Notes: generated by a model not told the origin, from the sequence alone. Counted from the first letter of the stretch, positions 11,155 to 19,850 are shown. The stretch is DNA of 64,000 bases from Macrostomum lignano (GCA_002269645.1 NIVC01000762.1:124001-188000), one strand, 5' to 3'. Translations and numbers: made by a program.

Positions 11155-14100
11155 CTCAATCGCTGCCCATGTGACTTAGCTCTGCGCCGTTCGCTCCTCG
11201 GTCACAGTTGGCAGCATCTCCTTCGTTCACTTCCGCAACTCGATCAGTAGTAGCTGTTAGGTCTTTGTTCTGAGCTGGATCGGGCTCGGTCAGATCTTGG
11301 TTCCGCTTCTGCTGCCTGGAAGTCTTGCTGAGTCGCCTCGAGTGTCTGTAGAAATTTTTAAAGTCCAGCTGCCTGCCGAACTCGGCCTCTGTCTTCTGCC
11401 TCTCGTAGTTCCAGTTTATCTCTTCGACTGCTCATCAGCCAGGAGGGCGGCAAGTTTGAGTCGAGAGGATTAGTCTTGCGGAAAACTGAGACCCCAGTAG
11501 CTAGCTAGGATTTTAAAGGAGTGCATCTCAATTGAGGCCAACATGCATCTGGATTAATCTCTGACATTTTCTTCTCGATAAGTTTACTCAATTGGTTTTG
11601 AACGTCAGATGTTGTTTGTGATTTTCAGCGTCATACAGGATTAAGGCAAAGGTTTCTTTTAAGATTTTTATTTAAGAATCGATGGTATGAAACTTATCAT
11701 TATGGTTCTGTACTAAAAAATTCGGTAAATGCTCGAAAAAATTTTATGTAAGGTACTTTGTACTCAAACTGAGAGATTTATACTCAAAGTCGGAGATCTA
11801 TGCTCAAACTCGGGGTTCTACATGTATGCCAAAGATCTGTATTCAATCATGGGAATCTTTACTCAGTCATGGGGATCTGTACTCAATCATGGGGATCTTT
11901 AATCAGTCATGGGGATCTGTACAAGGTCATGGGGATCTGTACAAGGTCATGGGGATCTGTACAAGGTCATGGGGATCTGTACCCAGTCATGGGGATCTGT
12001 ACTCAGTCATGGGGATCTGTACTCAGTCATGGGGATCTGTACTCAGTCATGGGGATCTGTACTCAGTCATGGGGATCTGTACATGGTGATCTGTACTCAA
12101 TCATGGGGATCTGTACATGGTGATCTGTACTCAATCATGGGGATCTGTACTCAACCATAGTTATCCGTGCTCAATCATGAGGATCTGTATGCTCACATTT
12201 ATACTCCGGATTCCTTGGCTGCCAATAGACCCTCTCCCAGATGAATAGAAGGATAAACAGGACACCAAATATGGCCGCCACGATTCCCAGATGTTTGTTG
12301 CTTGTTGAGAACAGCGACTGGGCGACTTCCACTGCCACCTCGCGGTCGTTTTCCTAAAAAATAGTTTTTTTCAGCAATAATTATTTGCATTAAATCGTTA
12401 AACTTTTGCTATGCTCATTGAATTGTTTTTCCTACAGTTTATACCTTGAAAATGGACATTGACAAACGGCATGCATTTTCGACGTTAAATCGGTCGCTGA
12501 CTTAAATTAAAAAAATACAATTTTGTTATATTACGGGCAGAATTTCACCAAATTTCCAAACGTAAATTGTAACTCCATTCAACCAAAAAGTATTATAATA
12601 TGGAAAAATACGTTTTATAATAGTGACACCCAAAAAGGTCGTTTTCGCAAGGTGTACTGTTTTAAGATAACTTTCCTAACTTTTTTATCTCATTAATTTG
12701 TTAATTTTGTTTTATATCAAAAGAAGTTTTTATAAAAGACTGAGAATTTATTCATCTTCAAATAGAGTTCAAACTTTAAAAAATCTGATTTACCGTTTTA
12801 AAGTTATTGAGCAATTTGTTGCAGTGCTCAACTTAATCGCCTATCTCTTAAGTGTAAATCTGTATTATTGGTTGTTGGTCGGTTTTTAAACCAAGTTATT
12901 TTTATGACTTATCAATCACCTGATCTTCAATGTGCCGGTGCCCCAATAGCTGTCTGTAGATGTCGATTTGGTGTCGAAGAAAGTTCTCAGCCAGACATTC
13001 GCCAACTCGTGGTGGCAAATTTGAGTGCACGCCACGAATGGAGGGTCGCTTCAGCACCAGCTGGGGTTTGAGACTCCGCATTCGTCCCGGATGCTCCTGG
13101 CGAATGTGCAGGTACATAAAGTGCTCAACCAGTGCGCCGTGGTGCGGCGCCTCGTCCGATGTGTCGCCGATGCCCAGAGCCCCGCTGTCAATATTTGTCT
13201 CCGATAGGTTGCCAGCGCTGTTGCTGTCCAAGTCGGCGTCCGATGCCAGCTGCATCAGGCTTTTCCAATCCGCAATGGCTGCAAATTCGTGGCGAGGAAA
13301 AACACCGAGGCTGGTTGCTCACTTTTGAGGGGATTTAAACTTCTTAAGGGTCTCATATGGGAATCTATACTCATATTTTGGGAATCTGTACTCATATTTT
13401 GGGAATCTGTACTCATATTTTGGGAATCTGTACTCATTGGGAATCTGTACTCATATTTTGGGAATCTGTACTCATTGGGAATCTGTACTCATATTTTGGG
13501 AATCTGTACTCATATTTTGGGAATCTGTACTCATACTTTGGGAATCTGTACTCATATTTTAAGAATCTGTACTAAAATTTGAGAATCAGTACTCATAGCC
13601 TGAAATTAGGCTCATGACTAAAATACAAGGACCATTTTTTTAATTTTTGGAACTTATAAATACTATCTGGATTCGAAATGTCCACTTCAAAGACATTTCT
13701 CAATGGAAAGTATATAAAATTACCGATAGGTGTGGACCCAAGTTCGTACACCAAAACTTGCTCGTAGGATCCATTAATAACGGTGATCTGAAAATGAGTA
13801 GAGAATTGTCTCACCACAATTTCCCTTTCAAACATTTAAACACTCTCAAAATGTGAGAACCACTCACATTAGTCTTAAAAAATCGATAATCTTCTTCGGG
13901 TCTCTGAGCAGACTGGCTCAGCGCGGCCGTCACAACCGCGGTGAACATGGAGATGAGCACCAGGCCGAAGCTGATCCACATCATGGCGAACAGCCGGCCA
14001 AGGATTGTCTTGGGGGATCTGTCTCCGTATCTGGCCGGGTGGGTGCGTTTCTGTCTGTCTGTCTGTCTGTCTGTCTGTCTGTCTGTCTGTCTGTCTGTCT

Positions 14101-17100: not shown

Positions 17101-19850
17101 TGCCTGAATCGGTGTAATGCACGCTCGTGACAATTAGTAACTTAAGGCCACGTGCAATATAGAGTGCGTTGAGCTGAATTCTCAAGTTGAGTTCAGTCAC
17201 GGAGCAGCCGGTGAGGTGGGTGACAGGAGAGTTCACGAGAGAGGAACCACCTGCTCTGTATATGCAGTCTGGGCAGTACTGAGACCTCAACTATCTCCGA
17301 GTAGTCACTGTGATCCGAGTGGCATAGCGGAATTACGATTTTATCTACTGTTGAAGTATAACCTCTCGCGGATAGAATCAAGTTAATAATATGCAGTGCA
17401 TGCTTAGATTTTTAATTGCACCGCTTTGCTACACTGATGTCATGAACTGACACTTATTTTCTACTGTGATCTCAGGAACTGACACTTATTTTCTACTGTG
17501 ATCTCATGAACTGACACTTATTTTCTACTGTGATCTCAGGAACTGACACTTATTTTCTACTGTGATCTCATGAACTGACACTTATTTTCTACTGTGATCT
17601 CATGAACTGACACTTATTTTCTACTGTGATCTCAGGAACTGACACTTATTTTCTACTGTGATCTCATGAACTGACACTTATTTTCTACTGTGATCTCATG
17701 AACTGACACTTATTTTCTACTGTGATCTCAGGAACTGACACTTATTTTCCACTGTGATCTCATGAACTGACACTTATTTTCTACTGTGATCTCATGAACT
17801 GAAACCATTAGTCAGCTGTGTACGCATGAACTGATACCATTAGTCACCTGTGTACTCATGAACTGATACCATTAGTCAGCTGTGTACTCATGAACTGATA
17901 CCATTAGTCAGCTGTGTACTCATGAACTGATACCATTAGTCAGCTGTGTACTCATGAACTGATACTATTAGTCACCTGTGTACTCATGAACTGATACTAT
18001 TAGTCACCTGTGTACTCATGAACTGATACCATTAGTCAGCTGTGTACTCATGAACTGATACTATTAGTCACCTGTGTACTCATGAACTGATACTATTAGT
18101 CACCTGTGTACTCATGAACTGATACTATTAGTCACCTGTGTACTCATGAACTGATACTATTAGTCACCTGTGTACTCATGAACTGATACCATTAGTCAGC
18201 TGTGTACTCATGAACTGATACTATTAGTCACCTGTGTACTCATGAACTGATACTATTAGTCACCTGTGTACTCATGAACTGATACCATTAGTCAGCTGTG
18301 TACTCATGAACTGATACTATTAGTCACCTGTGTACTCATGAACTGATACTATTAGTCACCTGTGTACTCATGAACTGATACTATTAGTCACCTGTGTACT
18401 CATGAACTGATACCATTAGTCAGCTGTGTACTCATGAACTGATACCATTAGTCAGCTGTGTACTCATGAACTGATACCATTAGTCAGCTGTGTACTCATA
18501 AACTGACAATAAATACCAAAATTCCGGCATTTCAGGGTCGGCTTCTATCGCACAGGCAATCAAAACCCAGAAAACACAATTGGGAAATATTTGCACAGGC
18601 AAATGGGAGAAATGTGAGACATTAGATGGGGGACGGGGTAGTTAATCATTGAGAGCACAGAGCGCAGCTGCGGTGTTTAATCTGTTAATTGGCAGAGCCC
18701 ATGCAATCCACAGAACTGAATTCCAGCTCTCAATCTCAAGCGCCTACTTCAGTATTAACTCTCTCTCTCTCTCTCTCTCTCTCTCTCTCTCTCTCTCTCT
18801 CTCTCTCTCTCTCTCTCTCTCTCTCTCAGGGCAGGCTAATAAAGAGAGCACACCATCATTGATGGCTGGTGCTGTGAAAAGCTGAGCTAGCTAAACAGAG
18901 ATCTTGGCTGCGTTGGACAAAACTAATAGGAAAATCTGTCTCCATCTCACCCCTCTTTGTCTCCATCTCACCCCTCTTTGTCTCCATCTCACCCCGCTTT
19001 GTCTCCATCTCACCCCTCTTTGTCTCCATCTCACCCCTCTTTGTCTCCATCTCACCCCTCTTTGTCTCCATCTCACCCCTCTTTTTCTCCATCTCACCCC
19101 TCTTCGTCTCCATCTCACCCATCATTGTCTCCATCTCACCCTCACTGTCTCCATCTCACCCATCATTGTCTCCATCTCACCCTCACTGTCTCCATCTCAC
19201 CCCTCTATGTCTCTATCTCACCCTCACTGTCTCCATCTCACCCCTCTTTGTCTCCATCTCACCCCTCTGTCGCCATCTCACCTCTCTCTGTCTCCATCTC
19301 ACTCATCTGTGTCTCTATCTCACCCTTTCTGTCTCCATCTCACCCTCACTGTCTACATCTCACCCTCTCTGTCTCCATCTCACCCATATTTGTATCCATC
19401 TCACCCTCACTGTCTCCATCTCACCCTCACTGTCTCCATCTCACCCATCTCTGTCTCCAACTCACCACATCTGTCTACTTCTCATCATCTTCTCGCCCTC
19501 TCCCCAGTCTCACCCGGAGTCCTCAGCACGGGGATAAATGAGCTGGCTGGTAAAGCCGAGTGCAGCGGTCCCTGCGTCACGGGGAAGCTCAAGTTGCAGT
19601 GGTCCAGCCCGTCCCTCAGCAGAGCGTTCTCATTCGGATAGCGGCGCATGATGAAGCTGACCTGGTTTCCGAGGCAGCCCAGCAGAGCCGGCCTCAGCAG
19701 TTCCCACACGACTCCTTCAACGCGGCTGTGAACAAAATCTGAGAATGGCGGATGGCTGAAGTAACCGACTGTCAGGTTCAGCGGCGACATTGTTGCGCTG
19801 AGGTGCTGACTGAGAATGGGGATATCGGAACACTTTAATAGCAGCTGTTC
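11155..19850 (-). CDS. Glutamate-receptor-like ligand-binding channel with a K+ selectivity filter (S1-M1-P-M2-S2-M3); 5' end and last exon uncertain
   Basis: Exons 19850-19514 (S1: LTVGYFSHPPF...FIPVLRTPG), 15928-15789 (M1: AWPLLLIILVSCSFAAVLVWVL), 15222-15128 (ERLKNPQEFPRDFIRGFWEGWWWAFITMTTVG), 14030-13868 (YGDRSPKTILGRLFAMMWISFGLVLISMFTAVVTAAL), 13787-13724 (ITVINGSYE), about 13320-12920 (S2), 12353-12198 (TM: LGIVAAIFGVLFILLFIW) and about 11500-11155. The first five exons join in phase. Confidence 0.85.
11790..12190. repeat. 20-bp minisatellite GGGGATCTGTACTCAGTCAT
   Basis: Tandem copies visible directly. Confidence 0.95.
13355..13590. repeat. About 21-bp minisatellite GGGAATCTGTACTCATATTTT
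   Basis: Tandem copies visible directly. Confidence 0.95.
16150..17104. repeat. 22-bp minisatellite AATGTGTGTAATGAGGTGCCNT
   Basis: More than 40 tandem copies. Confidence 0.98.
17440..18505. repeat. Compound 32-bp minisatellite with two monomer types switching at about 17803
   Basis: GAACTGACACTTATTTTCTACTGTGATCTCAT followed by GAACTGATACCATTAGTCAGCTGTGTACTCAT. Confidence 0.95.
18940..19460. repeat. About 21-bp pyrimidine-rich minisatellite (TGTCTCCATCTCACCCCTCTT)
   Basis: Tandem copies. Confidence 0.92.

Follow-up and report, generated by a model that had tools for sequence, protein, structure and literature searches.

Accounts of how ionotropic glutamate receptors (iGluRs) originated rest on bacterial GluR0, a K+-selective channel with two transmembrane segments (TMs), and on a single rotifer receptor, AvGluR1, reportedly described by Lomash et al. 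in 2013. GluR0 is K+-selective (PMC12332018), and AvGluR1, which bears the TxVGYG signature, prefers K+ over Na+ (PMC12226733). AvGluR1 is reported to be more like bacterial iGluRs, to possess the full eukaryotic architecture including the amino-terminal domain (ATD), and to respond to glutamate as well as to hydrophobic amino acids (PMC12332018; PMC12226733). Here we describe a 64,000-nucleotide (nt) window of the Macrostomum lignano genome (GCA_002269645.1 NIVC01000762.1:124001-188000; the whole stretch of DNA analysed, with positions counted from its first letter), the minus strand of which carries, at 11156-19850, what is very probably an intact, 5′-incomplete gene for one subunit of a GluR0-type channel with iGluR architecture. 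The encoded protein belongs to an animal family that is large, old and apparently unstudied, and that stands, in its structure, between bacterial GluR0 and animal glutamate receptors.

The channel gene comprises eight exons with GT-AG introns, in which all borders read AG/GT and all phases match. Joined, these exons form a coding sequence of 1587 nt (528 codons plus a TGA stop, with no internal stops), and the 528-residue product runs in the order S1 (first ligand-binding segment), TM1, pore loop (WWWAFITMTTVG, continued by YGD), TM2, S2 (second ligand-binding segment), TM3 and a basic tail. Every element that an earlier, sequence-only reading of this DNA had described for the spliced exons, from S1 to the third TM, is thus present where that reading placed it, on the minus strand. 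The first exon identified, which is not the true first exon, lies at 19514-19850 (337 nt, with an AG acceptor and a GT donor, ending in phase 1); it encodes S1, which forms lobe 1 of the clamshell, along with a conserved N-terminal Cys (LNLTVGYFSHPPFS...GVVWELL...FPVTQG...FIPVLRTPG), and is 100% identical over residues 1-55 to the M. lignano protein P0004. Exon 2 (15789-15928) encodes the linker that precedes M1 together with TM1 (AWPLLLIILVSCSFAAVLVWVL), and exon 3 (15128-15222, 95 nt, ERLKNPQEFPRDFIRGFWEGWWWAFITMTTVG) supplies the pore helix along with the selectivity filter's first half before ending in phase 2 within a Gly codon. The intron that the same reading had placed inside the GYG triplet is indeed there: a phase-2 intron at 14031-15127 interrupts the first Gly codon and holds (TCTG)n, (GAGAGG)n and a 16-bp minisatellite, such that the pore motif WWWAFITMTTVGYGD straddles the junction at 15128/14030 (...ACG GTC GG joined to A TAC GGA GAC). 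Exon 4 (13868-14030) contributes (G)YGDRSPKTILGRLFAMMWISFGLVLISMFTAVVTAALS, the second half of the filter and TM2, followed by the start of the S2 linker. Exon 5 (13724-13787, 64 nt, ITVINGSYEQVLVYELGSTPI) encodes the first strand and helix of S2 with a conserved N-G-S motif. The main S2 exon, exon 6 (12920-13278), carries a lineage-specific acidic loop of about 35 residues (LASDADLDSNSAGNLSETNIDSGALGIGDTSDEAP), an acidic residue (the E of GALVEHF, where known receptors bind the α-amino group) and, within GECLAENF, the Cys conserved in S2. Exon 7 (12197-12353) completes S2 and adds the third TM helix (LGIVAAIFGVLFILLFIWE), the equivalent of M4 in iGluRs, and exon 8 (11156-11427), the last coding exon, encodes the basic cytoplasmic tail and the TGA stop (11156-11158).

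The exon joins are independently supported because two M. lignano proteins bridge them: P0004 spans exons 1-4, and a paralogue, P0003, spans exons 4-8, with KVYWKPRNPNYKFVERNWKYDRQK supporting the last join. The window holds a single copy of the channel gene, and AATAAA signals occur on the minus strand about 770 nt downstream of the last coding exon. UniProt entries P0001 and P0004 are 90-100% identical to individual exons and represent mis-spliced or frameshifted predictions of this same locus, which puts the window in M. lignano or a very close relative. Among the M. lignano predictions for the locus and a paralogue, P0001, P0002 and P0004 are incomplete, carry frameshifts or are joined to unrelated domains (an antisense-kinase tail and a fusion with SGF29); as a result of these faulty predictions, database domain annotation understates the family in flatworms. 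A C-terminal extension present in P0001 (window 8482-9137) was considered and rejected as a mis-prediction, since it is antisense to a kinase exon and missing from the paralogue P0003.

The pore is a canonical K+-channel pore loop (P-loop), with TTVGYGD spanning the 15128/14030 junction. Pfam Ion_trans_2 matches the TM1-P-TM2 part at 59.7 bits (E 2.6e-16), and Ion_trans also matches there. Searches of the Protein Data Bank (PDB) with the whole protein or the family profile returned only K+ channels, the best of them with an identical TTVGYGD, because the pore dominates the score; Lmo2059, KCNQ, Kv and KcsA match the pore helix, filter and inner helix at E 1e-10 to 1e-6. Hydropathy analysis placed TM1 at residues 138-158, TM2 at 204-226 and TM3 at 406-426; the P-loop lies between TM1 and TM2. 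A stretch of TM2, MFTAVVTAAL (FTAxxTxxL), resembles the iGluR M3 gate motif SYTANLAAF; T221 and A222 are nearly invariant in animals and bacteria, and the remaining positions differ. With respect to topology, all five N-x-S/T sequons (5/5) and four Cys (C7, C59, C85, C361) of the window protein fall in S1 or S2, a tail of about 100 residues rich in Lys and Arg follows TM3, and full-length family members begin with a signal peptide directly followed by S1. Based on the relatives' signal peptides, the sequons and Cys in S1 and S2, and the basic tail, the clamshell is predicted to be extracellular and the pore to be inverted as in iGluRs.

To either side of the pore, S1 and S2, taken as a family profile, have their best PDB matches among bacterial ligand-binding proteins. 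The window protein aligns co-linearly over S1 through TM3 with proteins of about 550 residues from cnidarians, hemichordates and annelids, and over S1 through S2 with bacterial GluR0-type fusions of SBP_bac_3, Lig_chan and Ion_trans_2. When scored against family profiles built without the window protein and with the pore removed, the S1 of the window reached 43 bits (best of 200 shuffles, 2.4) and its S2 reached 24.7 bits (best of 200 shuffles, 9.1). Furthermore, 16 family members, the window protein among them, were combined in a pore-less S1-GT-S2 profile that was searched against the whole PDB; its best match was the ligand-binding core of Synechocystis GluR0 (Slr1257; 1II5, 1IIT, 1IIW; E 5e-4, both lobes), followed by bacterial Gln/Lys-Arg-Orn (LAO/Gln-type) binding proteins and a Nostoc GluR0 homologue. 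None of the 24 PDB matches of this profile at E <= 10 was the ligand-binding domain (LBD) of an animal iGluR or of AvGluR1. A comparison of profiles by hhalign aligned animal with bacterial S2 at a probability of 92% (E 7.5e-7), and cross-controls of S1 against S2 were negative, as expected. In addition, the AlphaFold2 model of a full-length Saccoglossus member (P0009; predicted local distance difference test score 85, predicted template modelling score 0.71) has β/α lobes on either side of the membrane helices, and by Foldseek some 430 of the 440 residues in this model align with chains of GluA1-4 and GluN that contain the LBD and transmembrane domain (TMD) (E ~1e-13, identity 14-16%). The sequence-only reading had assigned the gene to an iGluR-like family with a K+ filter and a clamshell built from the flanking exons; the homology of the flanks to S1 and S2 and the GluR0 core as best PDB match bear out the family assignment, and the model of P0009, with its iGluR-type LBD and TMD, suggests such a clamshell for its homologue in the window.

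The family comprises a large set of proteins. An exhaustive profile search recovered 25,705 proteins at E <= 1e-3, the majority of them expected to match through the K+-channel pore only, and 524 clusters at E <= 1e-30. Homologues of the window protein reach E 1e-103 and are co-linear over up to 78% of the model; with the Pfam pore match and the bridged exon joins, the gene is far beyond a chance assembly. TTVGYG is present in 115 of 143 representatives (the best 150 minus those already in hand), nearly all of which place one TM about 190 residues after the filter. Named members come from Anthozoa, Octocorallia, Scyphozoa and Hydrozoa, from three hemichordates, from the annelids Dimorphilus and Capitella, and from Macrostomum, and all are annotated as uncharacterized. 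The pore is nearly identical in the animal family and its bacterial relatives (W-x-G-F-W-W-x-x-V-T-M-T-T-V-G-Y-G-D-R-x-P). Within the open-access literature, papers on GluR0 and AvGluR1 were found and none describing the animal family, a weak negative confined to that scope. Some cnidarian members depart from this plan and carry large N-terminal ectodomains (P0066 and P0225-P0242 from several cnidarians, P0074 and P0076 from Nematostella): one group (approximately 700-870 residues) has Ig/CUB domains, and Nematostella also has proteins of 3027-4084 residues with the channel module at the end. Other sequences in the 90% clusters of these giant members are called ‘F5/8 type C’ or ‘Fibronectin type-III domain-containing protein’, and the joining of a K+-filter channel to giant adhesion-type domains is unusual. 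An intron-less member of 497 residues also occurs at 8419-9912 of an ENA metagenome contig, alongside several similar ENA contigs; this contig (42.7 kb, 36% GC, sparse coding, with a reverse-transcriptase open reading frame (ORF)) is probably eukaryotic.

The age of the gene can be read from its introns. The exons encoding P0014 (Nematostella), P0005 (Glandiceps) and P0249 (Dimorphilus) were mapped on their genomes, and the introns were projected onto one alignment with the Macrostomum gene. Four introns are common to Macrostomum, Nematostella and Glandiceps at identical column and phase: one follows TM1 (phase 0), one interrupts GYG (phase 2), one precedes S2 (phase 0) and one comes after the initial strand and helix of S2 (phase 1). 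The 95-nt and 64-nt exons have the same lengths in all three species, and two further introns agree in phase and lie within a few columns of one another. One extra intron, of phase 1 and preceding the TM1 exon (15789-15928), is found only in Macrostomum, and Dimorphilus, which has a compact genome, keeps one of the shared introns, the phase-1 intron after the 64-nt exon. Because the four positions and phases are common to the three species, the gene structure is, by this comparison, older than the cnidarian-bilaterian split. In a bootstrapped neighbour-joining tree, the sampled bacterial fusions separate from the animal sequences at 100%; the flatworm sequence forms a long branch whose placement within the animal family has 42% support.

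These data bear directly on the notion that the gene reached Macrostomum by recent horizontal transfer from bacteria, or contaminates the assembly as bacterial DNA, to which we attach next to no probability. The LBD and pore are indeed nearest in sequence to bacterial GluR0-type proteins, yet seven spliceosomal introns divide the gene, and four of these occupy positions common to cnidarian and hemichordate orthologues, it is flanked by ordinary animal genes (kinase, GNAT acetyltransferases, filamin, homeobox, Cys-loop receptor), and all sampled bacteria fall outside the animal clade. Judged from intron positions, neighbours and tree, recent transfer or contamination is excluded and effectively refuted. 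Of the origins entertained beforehand, ancient or horizontally acquired, an ancient one is thus favoured by the four shared introns and the 100% split between bacteria and animals, and recent acquisition drops out; the family could have reached animals by an earlier transfer or could descend vertically from the ancestor of all iGluRs.

Upon comparison with described systems, GluR0 is supported by sequence as the closest working resemblance, with its K+ filter, its core of solute-binding-protein (SBP) type and its lack of an ATD. Synechocystis GluR0 (Slr1257) and the bacterial fusions of SBP_bac_3 with a K+ channel share the order S1, TM, P-loop (TxVGYGD), TM, S2, again with no ATD, and the animal family keeps their S2 acidic residue and their P-P-F and P-x-T motifs. 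Unlike GluR0, which has two TMs and ends after S2, the animal proteins continue past S2 into a third TM and a cytoplasmic tail, as eukaryotic iGluRs do; they also have conserved extracellular Cys (a C-C motif), lack the Arg that binds the ligand carboxylate, are encoded here by an intron-bearing animal gene, and are no longer recognised as SBP_bac_3 by single-sequence Pfam. With AvGluR1 the family shares an animal origin, three TMs, an iGluR-type LBD and the TxVGYG signature. Unlike AvGluR1, it has no ATD, and S1 follows the signal peptide immediately in full-length members: ANF_receptor, the ATD family, is missing from the precomputed Pfam lists of the members, and no such ORF occurs in the 4.3 kb of the window upstream of the gene, the 5′ end of which is incomplete. 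Kinship with AvGluR1 is not supported, as the solved AvGluR1 LBD was unmatched at E <= 10 with the pore-less profile, no Adineta proteins occurred among the matches of the homologue search, and the family is devoid of an ATD; by these sequence criteria it is GluR0-like rather than AvGluR1-like.

The same mixture of features separates the family from canonical animal iGluRs and from K+ channels. It shares with the AMPA, kainate, NMDA, delta, epsilon and lambda receptors the core fold and topology and an M4-like helix, and its F-T-A-x-x-T-x-x-L resembles SYTANLAAF in part; in contrast to them, a K+-channel filter replaces the Q/R/N-site loop, there is neither an ATD nor a conserved ligand Arg, and the LBD is nearer by sequence to bacterial binding proteins. 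With tetrameric K+ channels (KcsA, Kv, KCNQ, Lmo2059/NaK-type) it shares the pore helix, filter and inner helix (E 1e-10 to 1e-13), whereas its pore sits inside an extracellular clamshell, with a predicted inverted placement in the membrane, and it has no voltage sensor, RCK or cyclic-nucleotide domain.

Taken together, we propose the following as the most likely working model. Each subunit would present an extracellular two-lobed clamshell (S1 and S2) interrupted by a K+ pore module (TM1, the re-entrant P-loop TTVGYGD and TM2) and followed by the third TM and the basic tail, and four subunits, on the presumption of a tetramer, would form an inverted K+-channel pore. Closing of the clamshell on a small extracellular ligand would pull on the linkers between TM2 and S2 and open the TM2 bundle (FTAVVTAAL), and the resulting K+ efflux would hyperpolarise the cell. 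A more ambitious version can be advanced only tentatively, and we would not give it even odds: that the family consists of eumetazoan-wide, fast inhibitory ligand-gated K+ channels of GluR0 descent, a ‘missing link’ between bacterial GluR0 and animal iGluRs in which the ATD is absent, the K+ filter is kept and M4 is already present, with a non-amino-acid ligand, and that it expanded greatly in cnidarians, where some members have giant adhesive ectodomains.

Several results weigh against this model, beginning with the recognition of the clamshell itself. Pfam Lig_chan (PF00060) clears its gathering cut-off of 30.8 bits only marginally, scoring 33.5 over residues 143-232 and so covering profile positions 6-98 of 146, and no Pfam family, SBP_bac_3 and Lig_chan-Glu_bd included, matches the flanks of the window protein; of the domains that had been anticipated, Ion_trans_2 and, marginally, Lig_chan were thus recovered on the TM part, and SBP_bac_3 went undetected on the window protein. 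The hhalign comparison of animal with bacterial S1 was not significant (E 0.047), and the fold evidence comes from a homologue, P0009, that is 28% identical to the window protein. Moreover, a ligand-binding residue is missing. Across 134 animal and 20 bacterial sequences, four motifs are conserved at cleft positions, which we take to contact the ligand on the basis of established GluA2 and GluR0 structures: P-P-[F/Y] in S1, F-P-x-T (P-L-T in bacteria and iGluRs), N-G-S at the start of S2, and an acidic residue in S2, D in approximately 71% of animal members and E in the Macrostomum gene. The bacterial T-x-E-R motif (consensus T-A-E-R) holds its Arg in approximately 84% of the bacterial set; among the 134 animal sequences, the α-carboxylate-binding Arg of GluR0 and iGluRs has no conserved counterpart, and the corresponding segment is variable, often acidic and of low conservation (PVTQGPLH in the window).

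Because the carboxylate-binding Arg has been lost, the ligand is probably not a canonical α-amino acid, and for the same reason the clamshell might no longer bind a ligand at all. The latter, which we regard as unlikely, though the least unlikely of the alternatives, would leave a K+ channel that leaks, responds to ions or pH, is gated by a partner protein or serves as a modulatory subunit. It would account for the missing Arg and the low conservation of that stretch of S1, for the 35-residue acidic insertion in the flatworm S2 and for the failure of single-sequence Pfam to find an SBP domain, and the Ig/CUB/FN3 ectodomains of some cnidarian members suggest interactions with proteins or matrix. 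It sits less easily with the other cleft motifs, which are kept family-wide (P-P-[YF], F-P-x-T, N-G-S and the S2 acidic residue), and with a clamshell retained in more than 500 clusters and from a time that predates the cnidarian-bilaterian split, a retention that argues for a conserved sensing function. On the pattern of conserved and lost positions, a retained clamshell with changed ligand chemistry is the probable outcome.

The permeation step of the proposed ligand-gated K+ channel is open to a similar objection, as a GYG filter does not guarantee high K+ selectivity. The channel could be ligand-gated and yet weakly selective among cations, hence excitatory or mixed in effect despite TTVGYGD; this we consider distinctly unlikely. 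AvGluR1 is described only as preferring K+ over Na+ (PMC12226733), the pore would be inverted as in iGluRs, whose filters are non-selective, and some GYG channels do behave in this way. On the other hand, the entire P-loop, beyond GYG, matches that of selective K+ channels (WWAxxTxTTVGYGD), and GluR0, with the same loop, is K+-selective (PMC12332018).

The remaining difficulty for a functional channel lies at the gene's 5′ end. No start codon or signal peptide was found upstream of 19850, and two scans (19851 to 24300/27000) yielded no credible first exon with a Met, a signal peptide and a phase-0 donor; with this exon missing from the model, expression and an extracellular LBD are presumptive for this gene. 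A pseudogene or unexpressed relic, namely a truncated copy that lost its first exon, would fit the absence of such an exon from the 4.3 kb up to the neighbouring GNAT gene, an interval made up mostly of minisatellites. Nevertheless, we judge this very improbable: the 528 codons contain no stop or frameshift, the nearly invariant family residues are all present, the splice sites are all canonical, and a short exon for a signal peptide easily escapes a search that has no RNA data to draw on. In addition, approximately 30% of M. lignano genes are trans-spliced, with a spliced leader that ends in ATG (PMC8629364). A start supplied by the spliced leader at the phase-0 acceptor at 19850 is conceivable and would give M-EQLLLKC..., an N-terminus that is not signal-peptide-like and in which the conserved Cys of the mature domain follows just after.

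The surroundings of the channel gene are rich in repeats. Minisatellites with periods of 12-41 bp and up to 88 copies, about 1 kb each, occupy every intron and the region upstream (arrays at 11834-12189, 13358-13597, 15278-15530, 16147-17119, 17440-18506, 18935-19484 and 20030-21078) and together make up most of the gene's 8.7-kb span; mini- and microsatellites crowd all of the introns and so explain this large genomic extent. Long microsatellites of (GACA)n/(TCTG)n lie at 10712-11007, some 150 nt beyond the stop codon and presumably within the 3′ untranslated region, and at 14050-14266, ending about 20 nt from the acceptor of the (G)YGD exon. Upstream, two tandem intron-less ORFs for GNAT-type N-acetyltransferases (Pfam Acetyltransf_1/_10; 24231-24749 and 25846-26541, plus strand) are divergent from the channel gene and so bound the location of its first exon. 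Elsewhere in the window, a C-lobe exon of a CaMK-like protein kinase lies at 8284-8634 (plus strand), a run of exons for filamin-type Ig repeats (recurring ...PGSPF...) at approximately 29510-36466 (minus strand), with (TGTC)n, a microsatellite of the same type, in one intron, and a homeobox ORF with poly-Q tracts at 41417-41932 (plus strand). A RING-finger/TRIM-like ORF (Pfam RING families) follows at 45553-46932 and 44516-45079 (minus strand), and a transmembrane exon of a Cys-loop receptor (Neur_chan_memb) at 62244-62798 (minus strand). At approximately 54880-58130, a degenerate CT-rich repeat of about 3 kb (TCTCTCTTCCCTGCC...) shows extreme strand skew (GC and AT skews both about -0.8) and yields spurious ORFs of up to 1082 residues in several frames.

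The GluR0-type channel gene of M. lignano thus points to a much larger animal family than the bacterial and rotifer examples had indicated, with hundreds of clusters across Cnidaria, Hemichordata, Annelida and Platyhelminthes that keep the K+ filter and a GluR0-like core and have gained a third TM. The presence of this family in the cnidarian-bilaterian ancestor makes the order of events in iGluR evolution testable, in particular whether the gain of M4 preceded both the gain of the ATD and the loss of the K+ filter. Both Macrostomum lignano and Nematostella are tractable models, amenable to RNA interference and transgenesis, and are suited to finding the ligand and the physiological role of the family. 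Should its members prove to be ligand-gated K+ channels, they would provide a direct ionotropic route to inhibition that is absent in vertebrates.

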